A program made the translations under genes and the position numbers. Positions 32,365-42,435 of a DNA stretch of 64,000 bases are shown piece by piece; position 1 is the stretch's first letter; each line of letters begins with the position of its first letter. The notes beneath the pieces are model-generated. The model made no database searches, was not told the origin of the DNA, and saw only the letters and a program-made list of their open reading frames with translations. Source of the DNA: Dimorphilus gyrociliatus (taxonomy: Eukaryota; Animalia; Annelida); contig CAJFCJ010000009.1 of NCBI GenBank assembly GCA_904063045.1, positions 2,294,968 to 2,358,967 of the forward strand. Reading direction: 5' to 3'.

Positions 32365-33525
32365 ATGCCTATTTTGTACTCCGTAATTTCACGCGGATCA
32401 ACAATTCTTGCACAGTATGCTGGATACAGCGGAAATTTTACAGATGTTACTCAGCAAGTGTTAACAAGAATCTCACCTGACAGCGACAGGATGACCTATT
32501 CACACGGAGAGTAAGTGTGAGAAACATTCTAAATCTAATGCGAACTTAACTCAAGTATTCAATCATAGATATTTATTTCATTACGTATGCGACAAAGGTA
32601 TCGTGTATTTGTGCATAACAGATAACGTAAGTATCTTAGATTAATCAGATAATCTTTTATTCAAGTTGAAGTTTTGATCATTAAGATATTTAAAAGAAAG
32701 AATAATTCCTCTTCTGTTTTAAGATATTTTATAAAAGACATTGTACTCAAATAGTAATTTTTATTGATCAAAATACATCTTTGTTTTTATCTAGGCATTT
32801 GAGAGGTCAAAAGCTTTTAATTTCCTGCAATATATTAAAAAGAAATTCGAAGTACAATATGGTGACAGGGCAAAGACTGCATTACCATTTGCCATGAATA
32901 CAGATTTCTCTCAAACTTTAAAATCTCAAATGGTAAATATTTTATAAGATATTGAAGAAAATTGGTGAAAATTTTTATTCCTTTTTTCCTCTCTCTAGCG
33001 ACATGTTTCCGCCGGTGGTTCTCCTAGAAATGATTACAGTGAAAAATTGATTAAGGCTCGGAGTGAAGTGGACGAACTTAAGGGAAGTCTCGTTCGAAAC
33101 ATAGGTCAGTGTTTTTTTTTTAAAAGAAGCAAATAAATATGTCTGTATATTTTTAGATGATTTGGCTCAAAGAGGTGAAAAACTAGAATTACTCATCGAT
33201 AGAACAGAGGAATTAAACACAAGTGTAAGCTAATTTTTCTCCCTTTTTTGCAGATCTTACATATTAACCTAAACATCTATCTTTTTTAATTAGTCAATGA
33301 CGTTCAAAACAAAGAGCAGAAATCTTGCAAGATCGCTTTGGTGGAAGAATGTTAAGTTAACAATAATTATTGTCGTTATTTCAGTGGTAAATTACTTCAG
33401 TTGTAGTCTTTGACTTTACTTATTGTCTAAAAGTTTCTGTTTCTTTTTTCCAGGTAATTCTCTATATTATAGTATCGATAGCATGCGGAGGCTTAGGATG
33501 GCAAAAGTGTGTTAAAAAGAAGTAG
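32365..33525 (+). CDS. VAMP7: Vesicle-associated membrane protein 7 (longin R-SNARE)
   Basis: 'MPILYSVISRGSTILAQYA..GNF', 'ALPFAMNTDFSQTL', SNARE 'LAQRGEKLELLIDRTEEL', 'ARSLWWKNVKL', TM segment, and 'CGGLGWQKC'. Confidence 0.96.
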
Positions 33526-33765
33526 AATAGTACAACTGACTGCAAACTCAACTAAGCTGCAAAAAAAAAGAAACACTATTTGTTTATGTTTATTAAAAAA
33601 TGATAAATTATGTTTTTGACTATAGAGTATTATTTACAATAATTTTCACTTGACATACTCTAACATATCTTACAAGAGGTACATTTTAAAATGGTTATTT
33701 TAAACGATGTAGTTGTTGTCCATCAAATAGTTTGGTGTTATCAAATCATTTATGATAATCTTATT

Positions 33766-34206
33766 TTACTTGGTCCAACTCAATTTTGGCATGTCGAAAT
33801 GTTCTGTCATTCCATCTAGATGTTTATTAAATTTCTGAAAATAGTCAACGATTTAGAACAGTCTAGTCTTTGTTGCTTTGTAGATACTTACAATAATTTT
33901 TTCTTTATGAGTCAAAGCCGCTCGTTTCAAAATTTTTTCATCAGCCTAAAAATAGGATTTTGTAAGAATATTTAACAATAAGAGTTTAGTTTAAAAATGA
34001 ACCTTTTGCTTTTGAATTCTTTCATAAGCTAATTCAGCTTTAGTCTTAGTTTCTACATAGTCACTTTCCGTATAGTCCAACTCTTTGGTTCGTTTAATTT
34101 CTTCTTTTAGCTCTTTACTCTTTTTCTTCTTTTTTTTCTTTTTTATACCATGATCATTCTTTAGTTTAAGAGATCCTTTAGAAACGTTTTCATAATCATC
34201 CGACAT
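33766..34206 (-). CDS. FAM32A: FAM32A-like nuclear protein
   Basis: 'YENVSKGSLKLK', poly-Lys, 'KTKAELAYE', 'ILKRAALTHKEKI', C-terminal 'FNKHLDGMTEHFDMPKLSWTK*'. Confidence 0.94.
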
Positions 34207-35070
34207 GTTTATAAATACGACAATAGTGCCCTAAAATGGCTGCCGTTATTTTCGTTTATAAAAAAAATATTCATATAAAGCAAAATTTATATTATTTACT
34301 ATTTATTAAAAACCCTATTTTTTTCTTAAGTATAGTACAAAATTATTTATTGTGTATAATTTGTTTCATTATCACTCACATTTACTGCGGATTGATTGCT
34401 GAGCTTTACTTCCTGTTGGAAATATACGACGAAAAAGTTGTGAAAAGGTGAATAGTTTATTTGTTTCGTTATGTTATGTCATCTAAAGCTGATAAAGAAT
34501 ATAAATAATGATTAGCTAATTAATTAAGTACAACTTTTTATAAGGACAGCTAAGATATTGCAGTCTTTAGAATAGCGGAGTTTTATCGTCTTAGTCACAC
34601 CCTGACGGTTAATTAATGTACTTGTTTAGGGTGGTATTAATTAAAATGTATTGAATAAAATTTAAAAAATAATCATAAATAGAAAATAGGCTGCTGATGA
34701 TTATTTATTTATTATATAACTAGGTAATGATCAAAGTAAAATGAGCGCCTCAAAGAATTTATTCATGGCGTTAAAAGTATCTCAAGTACTATCTATATTG
34801 TTTAAAAGTATTAAAATAGCTGGATCAATATATAAGCATTAAGAAGATACTGAAAAAAAAACATAATTTATTATAGAAGGGCAACAAATATTGGACAAAA
34901 TAAAACAAAAGAAACTTATATTGAAAAGTGCAATATGTACCGTTATATGTTATCGCTTTAAACAGTCTACATAGATTGAATGGAGAAGAATCTTTTTCAA
35001 CTTTCAATTAACTCTACAGTAGCTTCTGTTAATAAAAATTTTTCAAACATATTTAAGAAAATACAGGAAA

Positions 35071-38000
35071 ATGAGAAGAATTAAAGAGTTCTTCTCAACC
35101 AAAGAGCCGAAAAAAAATTCAGGAAGTAATTCAATAGTTGAAATATCGTCTCCAACGGCAGTCACGCATAAACATCATGTAACATATGACGAAGGGACAA
35201 AAACCTTTTATAATCTACCAACCGAATGGCAAACGCTCGGTTTGAATCAAATTAGGTACGGAATAGTCTGTGATTTGGTCGCCGTTATTTATGATTTATT
35301 ATTTTTTGCAACGCTACATATCATCATTTTTTTGTTGATTTTATGTAACAAAAACATTTACCCACTACCTTAATGGATTCAAAGCTTTTAGAGTAAAAAT
35401 TTAGCGATTTTAATGTGGCATTTGGAACAATAGAAAGCTCACCTGATTGCCAATTAAAATTATTCAATCAGTTGACATTAATCTATTAGTTCATTTGCTT
35501 TTCTAATAGTAAAAGGCATGTAAGTGGTAATTAGAATTTTTGTTCACATTACATTCCATACTTTTATCTAATATTTTCCTGAATTGGAGCGTTTTGGATA
35601 CATCCACAAGAATGAGAAAAGAAACAAGGAAGTGAATACTCTTCCATAGCTGACTTTTCTTTAAATGTACCTCCCCCCTCCCTTTTAAATCCTGTTAACT
35701 TTCGGTAAAATGTTCCATCATACTTCTTAGTTGTTTTTACGCATGTTTTTATTTTTATTATTAGAATAAATACTACTTCCCTTGGTTTTATCTAAAGAGA
35801 GTTTTTCAGTCATTGTATTTGGTTACAATAATTTATTGTTTGCTGGTGATTTATGCTTAAACGATAATTTTTCGCTTTTGCTTTATATATTCACAGCCAT
35901 GGCATTATCATCATTATTTAAAAGTAGTAAAAAAGGGAAGCACTACATTACACCCACAAGTCCAACGTCTATCAAAGAAATAAGTGGTCCATCAAATTTT
36001 AAAAGACATATTCATGTGGCTTTTGACAAAGAGAAACAACAGTTTACGGGTCTACCTGATAATTGGGAGCAAATTCTGAAAGATCATAAAATTACGTATG
36101 TGCTTTAGCTTCATTATTGAATAGTTACTTTTTGTATCGATTTAATTTTTACTTTATATACATACTACATATATATTACATGTATTTAAAGGAGGGAATA
36201 ATTTGAAACTTTATTTCCTGCATGTTTTCAACTTTTACAGCAAGGAGGAACAAAATGAAAATCCTCAGGCAGTTATTGATGCCATTCACACTTTTGAAAG
36301 TAATCAACATAAACCTACTAAATTTATGAATGAAGAATGCCAGTCAAATGATAGTTCATTTGAAGGAGATATGTTAGTGATTATTTGCTTATATCTTAAT
36401 ATATCCTATATTCTTAAAATCTTCTTCAATATAGTGAAGGTGAGATTTCTGGTTTCGTCGCTAAAGCACCTGTAAGTCAACTTTTATTTATTGACTATAA
36501 AATTTATTGTTTAGGGTAATATAAATATAAATAGATTTCATACTTTTATATACTATATAACCTATATATGTAGAAATATGCAAGTATCTACTAATATATA
36601 TATATATATATATACTATACTTTTAAATAATTGGGCTATCGGTAAAATATTTGTATTAATTTTTGTCAAATGAATTAGGAACTTACCGAAATTACACATC
36701 CAATATCAACGATAAATCAGGTTAATTAAAATATATTTCTTTACAGGCTTAACCTAACAAGCTACTGCTGAGTACTAATAACGTCTAATATATTATTTTT
36801 AATTAACAATTCCTACATCTTCTTAAGCTTCATATGCTTAAATATTATTTTATATCCTTACGAACAGAATTCAAATAGAATAGAATGTAATCCTTAAAGT
36901 ATTCATTTTTCTAACTTTACCTCTTTTTTAAGCTCATTGAATAACATTTATATCAAACGAAATAGCTTAACCTTGTTTTACCGATCTGCGAGTTCTCTCT
37001 TTCTAAATATGTTAACACATATACAATAGAAGTTGAAATGATTGATTTCTTTTTTATTTATAACAAAAGCTTTTATAATGAAAATTTTTACATGTAAACA
37101 TTGTTTTAAATGTCTTATTAAATTGTTCTAAATAATTCTAATAGCCTGTAAAAGCGATTAACGAAAAGGTTGAGAAAATTAGCATAGAAGGTTACAAGAA
37201 AAATGAAGCTAATGATTTGACACGTCACAAATCGATAAAAAAGATCAAGAAGACTGATGAACAGATTATGCAGGAATTAGGTAAGTTAATTAAAAAGTTT
37301 GACAACTGTATAGTTTAACTTTTTGTTTTCTTTGCAGACGAACTGGTTAATAAAACTGTAGACCCGTTAACAAGATACGAAATAAAAAAGAAAGTAGGCT
37401 CAGGGTAAAGTATATCCTCTACGTTTTTAATTCTTTTTTTTCACTCTTCTTCCGTGTGAACTATTTAAAATTTAACAATAGGAACCTTTGAATTTATTCT
37501 AAGTAGATTTTCTTTTACAGATATAGTTAACATTTCAATGTATGTCTATTTTTAGTGCATCCGGAACTGTCTGTGAAGCTTTGGATAAAAAAAATAAGCA
37601 ATTGGTAGCAATAAAGAAAATGGACTTGAATAATCAACCTAAGAAAGAATTAATTATTACAGAAATTAGAGTGATGAAGGAATATCACCATGATGCTATT
37701 GTAAATTTTGTTGACTGCTTTCTAGTTGGCAAAGAATTATGGGTCGTTATGGAGTTTTTAGCTGGAGGAGCTTTAACCGATGTTGTTACTGAAACTATAT
37801 TAAGTGAACAACAAATTGCAAGTGTATGCAAGAAATGCCTTGAAGCCCTTGAATATTTACATTCATTATGCGTTATACATAGAGATATAAAATCTGATAA
37901 TGTTCTATTAGGAATGAATGGCGAGGTTAGTGATATAGCACAGTACAATGCCATTAAAATATTCATAAAATTACTTCTCTTTATCATTTACACAGGTAAA

Positions 38001-38499
38001 GTTAACTGATTTTGGATTTTGTGCTCAAATTTCTCAAGCTGCTGAAAAGAGAAATACTATGGTGGGAACACCTTATTGGATGGCTCCTGAATTGGTTCAA
38101 CGAGCTAAATATGGTAATAAGGTGGATATATGGTCTCTGGGGATTATGGTTATTGAAATGTTGGATGGCGAACCTCCATATTTAAATGAACAACCAATTA
38201 GAGCTTTGTACTTGATTGCTTCCCATGGAAAGCCAGAAATTAAGAAGAAGGATATTTCCTACGATTTACAAGTAATTTGACTGAGAAATTACAATTTGAG
38301 AGAACATTTATGAATAATGCATTTTTAACTTTTTCAGGACTTTTTGGATTGTTGCCTAAAGGTAGAAGAGGATGCAAGGTCATCGGCGGCAGAGCTATTG
38401 AGACATCCATTCATTATTAAAAATGCTAGCGACGAACAACTTAAGCAATTGGAACGAAACATTACAGCAGCAAGAAAGGCTTTACAAAAAGAATTTTAA
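35071..38499 (+). CDS. Group I p21-activated kinase with two alternative CRIB-encoding 5' exons
   Basis: PBD exons at 35071-35255 and 35899-36095; '[11 protein letters not shown]'; kinase motifs 'VGSGASGTV', '[11 protein letters not shown]', '[12 protein letters not shown]', 'DFGFCAQI', '[12 protein letters not shown]'. Confidence 0.95.
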
Positions 38500-38535
38500 G
38501 GTTGTAAAATAACAGCTGCATTATGTGATTTCAAT

Positions 38536-38539
<4 letters not shown>

Positions 38540-38568
<29 letters not shown>

Positions 38569-38582
38569 GTGTGTGTGTGTAT
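38540..38582. repeat. (AT)n(GT)n microsatellite in the PAK 3' UTR region
   Basis: Visible dinucleotide runs. Confidence 0.85.
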
Positions 38583-39104
38583 AATTTCTCTGCTACATTC
38601 CAAGATTTTTGTTTTGATTGATAATATTCAATAATTTGTCAATGTTATTTTAAAACTTGTAAAGTTTTTTAAGATGTGCTTAAATGTTTAAAAAACTTAA
38701 GCTTTTCTCCTTTTTTCTTTTAACTCACCAGCATTTTTATTTCGATAGATATTCATTTGTTATTCAGGAATGTGTACATTGACTAGACAAGAAATGAGGA
38801 TATTGTATATGGAACACTCTCTTCTTCTTTTAGGTACATTCAGAAATGTAAAATATTCGCTCATAATACTTTATCGTAACGTAATTTCATTAAATTCAAT
38901 ACAAACAAATACTAATCATTATGTGATTATTTTTATTGGATACGGATATTGTCCTTAATTGTTCCTTTTTTGAAATAAATTTAAATAAAACAAAATATTG
39001 TCAATCATTTAAGTATATCGTCTAATGTAGAGGTTGATTGAAGTACTTTATTAATTATGTAATTAGATTAGCCATATTTATTCTCGTCATAAAGCTTTTT
39101 TAAG

Positions 39105-40245: not shown

Positions 40246-42435
40246 ATGGCTTCATCAGCTAAGAAATACCATCATATCCGTAAGTTTTAATAAAAAATTT
40301 TGTTTTGTAAACTAATAGTTCATTTTTACAATTTGTATTCAATCTTTCTTTAATAGAAGAGATTGTAGCCCACTCTTCCAAAGTTAACTGTGTTGCACTT
40401 GGCCAAAACTCTGGGAGAGTCATGGCTACTGGTGGTGAAGATAAAAAAGTTAATTTATGGACCACTGATAAGCCTAATTGTATTATGGTAATTATTAAAT
40501 TTATTTGTTTTTGAGGGCGATAACGAAGAGAAAAGTAATTTTGTAACATTTTAATAAGTAATTTTCAATATCTTTTGACAAGAAATAAGAATCCATAGAG
40601 GATGGATTCAACCTAAGAAAGGCTATAACGGCTCTTGACAGTTTTAAATTTATTTGAATGTCTTTCAATCTCTTTATCGCTTTCTATTCATAAAGAATGC
40701 ATTGTGCATTGAATGGAATTGAACTAGAACAAACTATACAGACTCTCTCGGGCCATACAAGCGGCGTGGACTGCGTACAATTCAACAAAACTGAAGAACT
40801 TGTCGCAGCCGGTTCTGCGTCTGGTTGTTTGAAATTGTGGAATTTGGAACAGTGCAAAATTGTGAGAACTCTGAATGGGCATAAATCTAGCATAAAAAGT
40901 ATCGAATTCCACCCATGTGAGCGTTTTGTTCTGAGTGGAAGTACCGATAGTAATATAAAATTATGGGATGTCGAAAGAAAGGGTTGTATATTCACTTATA
41001 GAGGCCACACCAACGGGATTAATTGCGTTCGGTTTAGTCCTGATGGAAAATGGTTTTGTTCTGGATCTGACGATTCGTCAGCAAAAATATACGATATTTC
41101 CTCTGGTAAACAAATAGCACAGTTAGCCACTTCGGCTCCGGTGAAAGCAGTAGAATTCCATCCAAATGAGTTTTTGTTATGTTTAGTATCTACGGATAAA
41201 ACACTAACATTCTGGGACATAGATGTCTTTAAATCAATTGGTAGCAGTCAACCATCTGATACTACAACTGATTATCGTTGTTTAAAATTTCATCCGGCCG
41301 AAAAGTGTGTATATGCTGCAACTAATGATTATTTAAAAGTTCATAGTTGGGAGCCGACAGAATATTTAGACTCCTTGAAAACAGGTTGGGGTGCCATTAG
41401 CGATATGGCTTTTTGTCAGGATCGTATTGTTGGTGTATCGATGCTGGGATCAAACGTATCTACTTATATTGTTGATCAGAATACTTTGCGACCATTTGGA
41501 GCTTCTGGAAGGGATACTGATCGTACAGAAAAGGGAAGTTCAGACAAGCGTAGGTCATTTGCAAAAGATGAAGCATTTCAAAGAAGTAACACACCAAAGG
41601 AGGATAAATTTGAAAAAGAAGATTTTAGAACGGAATCACAAGATTCAGACAAAGCTGACATTAAAAATCTTAACGAATATAGGGCAATGTTCCAACCTAA
41701 AAAGGAGGAAAGAAGACCACTGACTCAAGGGGGCGTGAATCCAGATGATTTTCTACCGAAAAAGGTACAGTCTACTGAACTGGCTAGATCTGAGATACCA
41801 ATAACATTAAATAAGGGGCACAATTCAATGATTGGTGTCCTACAAGCAAGAGCTAAAAACCTACAGATTGTACGAGCATTATGGACGACGGGAAATATCC
41901 GAACTTCTATCGAAACGGCTGTAGGAATGAAGGATCAATCCATACTCGTTGATATATTGGACGTTATTATAAAGAAAAAGTAAATAATAAAACTATTTTC
42001 CTCAATTATTTGCATACTAATCATTTTAATCCATAGCTCCTTGTGGACTCTGGATTTAGCTGTTATTCTCTTGCCCCATTTATTGCAGCTTCTCCAAAGC
42101 AAATACGAAAAGTAAGCATAATTTTAAAACGATATCTTTAAAACAAAAGGTTAATATCATGAAAATAATCTTACAGTTATGCCATTGTTGGTCTACACTC
42201 GGTAAAAACCATCTTAAAGTGTTTTGGATCAGTAGTAAAGGCTAACGTATCCGCTCCACCTGGTGCTCCAGGCGTCGACATATCAAGAGAAGAGCGTCAT
42301 GCTAAGTGTAAAGAATGCTATGATCTTTTGTGTAAAGTTCGTCACGTTATCGATTCCCCCCAACCACCTAAACACTTGATTAAATCTGCCTCCAAATTAA
42401 AAGAAGTTAAATTTCTATTCCAACAACTCGACTGA
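40246..42435 (+). CDS. KATNB1: Katanin p80 WD40-containing subunit B1
   Basis: '[27 protein letters not shown]', six WD40 repeats, and con80 domain '[43 protein letters not shown]'. Confidence 0.97.

Follow-up and report, generated by a model that had tools for sequence, protein, structure and literature searches.

Two candidate alternative CRIB exons in a PAK gene of the annelid Dimorphilus gyrociliatus

A compact PAK gene at the locus

This study concerns a PAK gene of the annelid Dimorphilus gyrociliatus in which two neighbouring exons, here named A and B, each encode a CRIB/PBD segment. The gene lies within a stretch of 64,000 nucleotides (assembly GCA_904063045.1, contig CAJFCJ010000009.1, positions 2,294,968 to 2,358,967 of the forward strand), referred to as the window, which is AT-rich (G+C about 30%) and dense in genes; all coordinates given below are those of the window. 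A preliminary description of the locus, made from the sequence alone, had proposed that A and B are alternative exons of one kinase rather than tandem domains.

The PAK gene is compact (3.4-kb), maps to 34412–38499 on the plus strand and is of the group I type. Pfam Pkinase matches were obtained on the open reading frames (ORFs) at 37542–38006 and 38059–38277, corresponding to exons 7 and 8 (E = 1.9e-31 for exon 7). The closest named relatives of the kinase are PAK1/2/3 proteins, with 60–69% identity, and the assembled ORF carries the GxGxx and GTPYWMAPE motifs. The locus thus encodes a STE20-type Ser/Thr kinase with a PAK-type kinase domain, nearest to the PAKs. Joined to the downstream exons known from RNA, exon A and exon B each give a frame that remains open, free of internal stops, up to the stop codon at 38497–38499, with predicted proteins of 468 aa for the A form and 472 aa for the B form.

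RNA evidence consisted of assembled contigs (no raw reads) from three public runs, namely a marine metatranscriptome (X1), a coral-associated metatranscriptome (X2) and an organism-labelled run (X3), the last of which is RNA, since its contigs are spliced. On the plus strand, the gene opens with a non-coding leader, exon 0 (34412–34447, at least 36 nt seen), which ends in the donor AAAAG|GTGAAT and has no ATG, so that the first AUG in each mRNA is that of A or B. Downstream of exons A and B, the common exon 2 (36241–36372, joints in X2 and X3) would complete the PBD and inhibitory-switch segment, and is followed by the small exons 3 (36435–36471, 37 nt) and 4 (36679–36720, 42 nt), and by exon 5 (37145–37280). 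The kinase domain starts in exon 6 (37338–37404, ..GSG), continues from the N-lobe to the catalytic loop in exon 7 (37556–37925) and through the activation segment and C-lobe in exon 8 (37996–38271), and ends in exon 9 (38338–38499, RNA joints). All joints downstream of exon 2 are present in X3; those of exons 5 and 6 are also found in X1, and those of exon 8 in both X1 and X2. The short introns of this region measure 57–70 nt; in the published D. gyrociliatus genome the median intron is 66 nt, and no trans-splicing was reported (PMC7854359).

Domain content and reading frame of exons A and B

Exon A (35058–35255, 198 nt) has its ATG at 35071 and encodes 61 aa plus two bases, while exon B (35897–36095, 199 nt), whose 5' boundary was placed from the conserved CAG|CC ATG G acceptor, has its ATG at 35899 and encodes 65 aa plus two bases. 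Both peptides consist of a basic N-terminus followed by a CRIB/PBD, of the Val type in the case of A. The two donors, AG|GTACGG at 35255/35256 for A and AC|GTATGT at 36095/36096 for B, are in phase 2 and fit a common acceptor, ..ttttacag|C at 36240/36241, yielding the junction peptides ..NQI-S-KEEQ (A + exon 2) and ..HKI-T-KEEQ (B + exon 2). The frames and phases proposed in the preliminary description are confirmed by these data; 35071, given there as the start of exon A, is the position of the ATG, the exon itself beginning 13 nt earlier, at 35058, in RNA. A and B are neighbouring homologous exons of equal phase, with the same flanking partners and a homologous end codon. The identity between their peptides is only 25%, and they have in common a pre-CRIB motif, SI.EIS.P, which lacks a counterpart in the outgroups.

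The earlier assignment of both exons to the CRIB/PBD class stands, as the exon A and exon B peptides score 35.8 bits (E 9.7e-9) and 51.6 bits (E 1.2e-13), respectively, against the Pfam PBD model (PF00786), whose gathering score is 21.3 bits. As judged from these scores, the PBD identity of both peptides is far beyond chance. The best matches of both among solved structures (PDB) are the CRIB peptides of PAK4, PAK6, PAK1 and PAK2. Exon A covers positions 1–33 and exon B positions 1–39 of the 59-position model. Exon 2 gives no Pfam match by itself and aligns with the C-terminal PBD-model region (to position 58) of P0008, a protein recovered in our searches. Both A + exon 2 and B + exon 2 align without break across the junction to the uninterrupted PBDs of P0008 and P0007. 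On these alignments, the remaining PBD positions lie in the common exon 2.

Neither exon has the full CRIB consensus ISxPxxFxHxxHVG. Specifically, Val replaces Phe and Thr replaces Gly in A; in B, where the Phe is present, the first His is replaced by Arg and the Gly by Ala. The I-S-x-P and the final His-Val are retained in both. The two deviations already described (F>V in A and first H>R in B) are therefore as claimed. In PAK1, GTPase binding is abolished by mutation of two His residues, and it is the first of these that B lacks.

Concerning the joining of the two exons, splicing from the A donor to the acceptor before B (AG at 35895–35896, exon start 35897) shifts the frame and meets a stop after 8 codons, in agreement with the out-of-frame junction anticipated from the sequence.

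Transcripts containing exon A or exon B

The B-to-exon 2 joint (36095>36241, GT..AG) is present in both X2 and X3, and B is the major form in X3. Upstream, a 242-nt contig of X1 contains 36 letters of the leader, ending at 34447, spliced to exon A at 35058. The leader-to-A intron is of the GT..AG type, and the match shows 0 mismatches over 236 nt (joint listed as 34444>35055). This contig departs from the genome at 35254/35255, at most 1 nt from the A donor. Exon A is thus transcribed, and it occupies an internal position, preceded by a non-coding leader exon, rather than opening the transcript. In X1 the A and B contigs have a similar low depth, 2.3 each.

Two contig ends bear on the structure of the X3 assembly. 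A 1917-nt contig (rec10) has its first base, 34418, placed exactly 30 nt (k-1) upstream of the leader donor, and another contig ends at 37172, a position worked out as an intron path merging into exon 5. These ends weakly suggest that the assembly graph branches at the leader donor.

RNA contigs also leave the genome at 35027 (X3), 36016 (X1), 34313/34368 (X3) and 38282 (X3), with at most 255 unplaced letters. Seven loose contig ends, including those at 35027 and 36016, were searched in the 64-kb window and none maps; the unplaced ends may represent chimeric contigs, other organisms or distant exons.

Conservation of both exons in related species

A word search with the exon-A ORF, which is blind to proteins longer than 1.75 times the query, returned a single relative, an ORF of 58 aa in Logan DNA contigs, whose cluster mate gave a 7.5-kb contig. 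Among the HMMER representatives, in which isoforms collapse at 50% clustering, a full-length A-type protein was not found and the same exon-A ORF was the only close relative. Scans of JGI metagenome contigs, exact for the exon 2 start and by protein pattern for exon A relatives, gave no match. The DNA of this second species (Logan contigs L001, L002, L003 and L010) is syntenic with the window, with a FAM32A-like neighbour on the other strand and then the leader with its donor, exon A and exon B in the same order; the dual exon thus exists in a related genome. The second species keeps the exon A ATG and its AG|GTACG donor, and the start of its exon B lies behind CAG|CC ATG G about 640 nt after exon A, with the B acceptor, pyrimidine tract and ATG context retained. 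In a third species (P0002), exon B is followed by the kinase exons on one contig.

The contigs of the second species stop inside exon B, and the B comparison covers the first 33 alignable codons. Three independent ones (L001, L002 and L010) end at one and the same base inside the B CRIB (..AACATTCATGT), which suggests an assembly branch caused by heterozygosity or by another, almost identical CRIB at a different place in the genome of this species.

Along the alignment of the two species, identity is about 80% in the leader exon, 78–84% in exon A (85% at the amino acid level), about 80% in the first ~85 nt of the intron after A and 70–76% in exon B, over a background of 36–50% elsewhere. The Nei-Gojobori estimates for exon A are dN 0.075 and pS 0.62 (dS about 1.3, omega about 0.06), those for kinase exon 7 are dN 0.068 and pS 0.79, and those for the 33 codons of exon B are dN 0.147 and pS 0.67. 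Moreover, the 33 differences in exon A are distributed as 2/7/24 over codon positions 1/2/3, and its other two frames are filled with stops. From this substitution pattern, exon A is under strong purifying selection, at a level of protein constraint equal to that of the kinase domain and tighter than that of the start of B; it is therefore a live coding exon, not a dead duplicate. The saturation of synonymous sites excludes a very recent gene conversion of the contigs of the second species.

The CRIB deviations of both exons are conserved in the relatives, exon A reading ..AVMHKHHV.. in the second species and exon B reading ..NFKRNIHV.. in the second and third.

The conserved stretch directly 3' of the A donor (35256–35340, plus strand) shows frame-breaking indels between the two species, and reading through the donor adds 39 codons here (a 100-aa ORF) versus 6 in the second species; hence this block is non-coding. 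Conserved intron sequence beside an exon is usual next to regulated exons.

Further upstream, in the intron after the leader, a 29-nt block on the plus strand (34589–34617, TCTTAGTCACACCCTGACGGTTAATTAAT) is identical in the second species, its surroundings showing 40–50% identity. This block, which contains TTAATTAAT, may have a regulatory role or belong to a small RNA that escaped recognition.

Outgroups and the direction of the duplication

A single PBD exon was detected in the leech Helobdella robusta (scaffold KB096742, L007) over the 10 kb that precede its kinase exons. Likewise, one PBD exon is present on a metagenomic animal contig of 14.5 kb (L008), where it is followed by an exon 2 beginning EQKENPNAVIDA. 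No B-type copy occurs in the fetched DNA of either; as the L008 contig reaches no further than about 525 nt beyond the 5' side of its PBD exon, an upstream PBD copy may have been missed there. In both, as well as in two metagenomic first-exon ORFs (P0009 and P0014), the PBD exon has the form IS.PTNV(K/T)H..HVGFD and ends in ..I + AG|GT. A Val-type CRIB (..H.HHV..) fused directly to an inhibitory-switch-like segment was observed in P0008, P0009, P0014, L007 and L008. Specifically, P0008 has as its second CRIB ..NVEHKHHVEYD.., which is very similar to that of exon A and continues into ..ITEEEIQDNPTEVL.. as A + exon 2 would.

By comparison with these relatives, the Val at the CRIB Phe position of exon A and its AG|GT exon end look ancestral for this PAK group. 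The F>V change, read in the preliminary description as a break of the consensus in A, is the state found in the leech and the metagenomic relatives and would not be a sign of decay. Exon B is in all probability the copy that gained the Phe and lost the first His, which is Arg in all three species. The 25% identity between A and B, together with the SI.EIS.P motif lacking an outgroup counterpart, points to a duplication within the lineage followed by strong divergence, and the duplication may be lineage-specific.

The searches also returned proteins with multiple PBD/CRIB domains. P0003, P0006, P0007 and P0013, all from metagenomic eukaryotes, carry two to four in tandem, with four in 296 aa in P0003. 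P0004, a bacterial Ig-repeat protein, was a false match.

Two proposed isoforms from one gene and the competing explanations

Group I PAKs are kept closed by the CRIB and an adjacent inhibitory switch, which group II PAKs lack; Cdc42/Rac-GTP, on binding to the CRIB and the beginning of the switch, unfolds the latter and releases the kinase (PAK1 autoinhibited structure 1F3M and CRIB–GTPase complexes). The reading that we favour, with moderate confidence, is that the gene produces a pair of PAK isoforms, one 468 aa and the other 472 aa long, whose CRIB heads are interchangeable; in the RNA available, B would be the common form and A a minor or condition-specific one. The arrangement would have arisen by tandem duplication of the first coding exon within one PAK gene. 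A transcript would begin with the short non-coding leader ending at 34447 and continue with either exon A or exon B, each contributing a start codon and a short basic N-terminus, then the CRIB and, from the switch, the beta-hairpin plus first helix. From exon 2 onward, the remainder of the inhibitory switch, the linker and the kinase domain would be identical in both forms. Double inclusion would cause a frameshift and a stop 8 codons into B, so that only single-exon mRNAs would encode the kinase. This scheme entails putative splicing of A to exon 2 and of the leader to B, rather than a separate start site for B. The reading of A and B as alternative exons of one PAK is supported in part: the homology of the exons, the B-to-exon 2 joint in RNA, and the expression and constraint of A are in place, and the joint from A to 36241 was not seen.

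Several observations weigh against this reading. The A-to-exon 2 joint (35255>36241) occurs in no contig of the three runs, so that of the two junctions to 36241 that were looked for, the B junction was found in X2 and X3 and the A junction in none; the leader-to-B joint (34447>35897) is equally absent from all contigs. The exon A contig of X1 ends 6 letters past 35254, and the first of these letters mismatches the G at 35255, a 1-nt discrepancy that may reflect a difference between strains in the final base of the exon, an error at the contig tip or an unforeseen junction. Furthermore, the 1917-nt contig of X3 is unspliced between 34418 and B, taking in A and the spacer, and is then spliced from B to exon 2. 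The depth of this contig averages 270, versus about 1250 on the kinase exons and 30–70 in neighbouring introns, which is the value expected if B and exons 2–4 stand at full depth and everything upstream, including A, stands near intron background. In X3, exon A is thus little above intron background and a minor form at best. As for the device that would keep A and B apart, the A–B intron, at 641 nt, is too long for steric exclusion, and both donors are U2-type. In addition, no docking/selector RNA duplex stood out when pairing was examined between the conserved blocks of the introns, the sequence ahead of B and the B–exon 2 intron (best z -2.1, with loose structure and energies within those of shuffled sequences). 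The frameshift on double inclusion, which holds in both species, is the only exclusivity device found; the A-to-B joint (35255>35897) occurs in no contig of the three runs.

An arrangement compatible with two isoforms, which we nevertheless regard as doubtful, is that of alternative promoters, with the A form starting at the leader and the B form inside the A–B spacer. The lack of a leader-to-B joint in X2 and X3, though B is the main form there, and the continuity of the X3 contig from the spacer into B agree with a separate B promoter, and the conserved block at 35256–35340 could itself be a promoter or enhancer; contigs cannot reveal RNA start sites. However, B has in both species a CAG directly before its CC ATG G, as well as a pyrimidine tract and a branch-point-like motif (TGATAAT/CGATAAT), all needless for a first exon, while the spacer just 5' of B is otherwise at background conservation and an unspliced AT-rich leader would hold many upstream ATGs. 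Neither exon was found at a transcription start of its own, A being spliced from the leader and B having a conserved 3' splice site, and therefore the possession of its own ATG does not mean that each has its own promoter.

It is unlikely, in our view, that exon A is never joined to the kinase and yields instead a CRIB-only peptide of about 70–100 aa, acting as a GTPase decoy and/or as an upstream ORF throttling the B form, translated either from a leader-A-B mRNA whose reading frame stops 8 codons into B or from an RNA in which the intron is retained. Such a product is in keeping with the lack of a contig for the A-to-exon 2 joint, with the X3 contig running continuously from A through the spacer to B, and with the usable splice sites on both exons, which do not prevent double inclusion; the strong amino acid constraint on A is compatible with any translated product. 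Yet A ends at the same homologous codon and in the same phase as B, and it lacks the last 20–26 PBD-model positions, which exon 2 supplies. The read-through tail is not conserved (39 codons here versus 6 in the second species, with indels), and the tail of an A + B product is merely an out-of-frame reading of the start of B. Moreover, its stop would lie far upstream of seven exon junctions, and mRNAs of this kind are normally degraded by nonsense-mediated decay.

The inclusion of A and B in one protein as tandem CRIBs is highly improbable and was rejected on the frame and on a stop in the second species. Two-PBD kinases do exist (P0008 and P0012 among the representative-search matches; also P0006, P0007 and P0013), and a single AG in the spacer, giving an exon start at 35802, keeps the A-to-B frame open in this genome. 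Nonetheless, this acceptor is weak and without RNA support, use of the conserved acceptor ending at 35896 shifts the frame in both species, and in the second species a stop four codons before the B ATG excludes any in-frame A-to-B join. The proposal that A and B are alternatives and not tandem domains thus holds in so far as an in-frame A + B is excluded there, the frameshift alone enforcing their exclusivity.

Finally, that exon A is a decaying unused duplicate can hardly be maintained: its lower Pfam score, its non-consensus CRIB and its low or absent signal above background in X3 are outweighed by an omega of about 0.06 with synonymous sites near saturation, a dN equal to that of the kinase domain, an ATG, frame and donor kept in a distant relative, splicing from the leader in RNA, and a Val-type CRIB that is the norm in this PAK group.

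Returning to the two-isoform reading, the swapped module would alter which GTPase (or lipid) opens the kinase and the tightness of autoinhibition, and the A and B forms would then differ in function. More tentatively, the two CRIB modules might bind different Rho-family GTPases or set different levels of autoinhibition, with splicing rewiring the input by cell type, stage or sex, a possibility to which we give rather low credence. If this were true, exon swapping here would do the job that separate PAK paralogues do in other animals.

Comparison with known systems

Mammalian PAK3 occurs as variants a, b, c and cb; its cassette exons, b (15 aa) and c (21 aa), enter after residue 92 and lead to constitutively high activity (PMC10017488). 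The autoinhibitory domain of PAK3b no longer inhibits PAK3a (PMC10017488, a review citing Rousseau 2003 and Kreis 2008). Like those variants, the case described here would involve alternative splicing in the GTPase-binding/autoinhibitory region of a group I PAK. Unlike PAK3, in which small inserts are placed in one fixed CRIB, here the N-terminus, the CRIB and the first switch segment would be replaced by a 25%-identical copy. Our full-text literature search found no PAK in which the whole GTPase-binding module is swapped by alternative exons, and to our knowledge no such wholesale swap has been described.

Alternative exons derived from tandem exon duplication are a well-known kind. A and B resemble mutually exclusive duplicated exons in their near-equal size (198/199 nt), phase, partners, frameshift on double inclusion and conserved intron. 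They differ from the usual pairs in being first coding exons with an ATG in each copy, in the putative nature of their exclusive use and in that no competing RNA pairing was found. The locus also resembles the two-PBD PAK-like kinases P0008 and P0012, in that one kinase is equipped with two divergent CRIBs; in those proteins both CRIBs lie in one polypeptide, whereas here the frame forbids this and A and B would be alternatives. With the leech and metagenomic genes (L007 and L008), it has in common the gene type, the exon end ..I + AG|GT in phase 2, the exon 2 sequence EQ.ENP.AVIDA.. and the Val CRIB, but the fetched DNA of these contains a single PBD exon instead of two.

The CRIB and the inhibitory switch form the input side of PAKs, the main Cdc42/Rac effectors. 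If both isoforms are made, the gene would constitute a natural experiment in CRIB specificity, with the same kinase and most of the switch placed behind heads that are 25% identical; it would also illustrate how exon duplication can preserve diversity in signalling where a miniature genome holds few paralogues. Two points limit the strength of the case, namely that the host is not a model organism and that the A-to-exon 2 junction was not found.

Neighbouring genes and repeats

Upstream of the PAK gene, a FAM32A-like gene on the minus strand (33500–34206) stands head-to-head with the PAK leader exon, with about 200 nt between the two starts. Its two 57-nt introns (33835–33891 and 33945–34001) are spliced in X1, X2 and X3, and its contigs in X2 and X3 pass into unplaced sequence at 34368–34372. 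Microsatellites of the (TA)n / (TG)n type occur within the PAK gene in intron 3 (36585–36624) and beyond its stop codon in the 3' untranslated region (38527–38592). Downstream of the PAK gene, a single open exon of 428 aa on the plus strand (40697–41983) encodes WD40 repeats and resembles the katanin p80 regulatory subunit.

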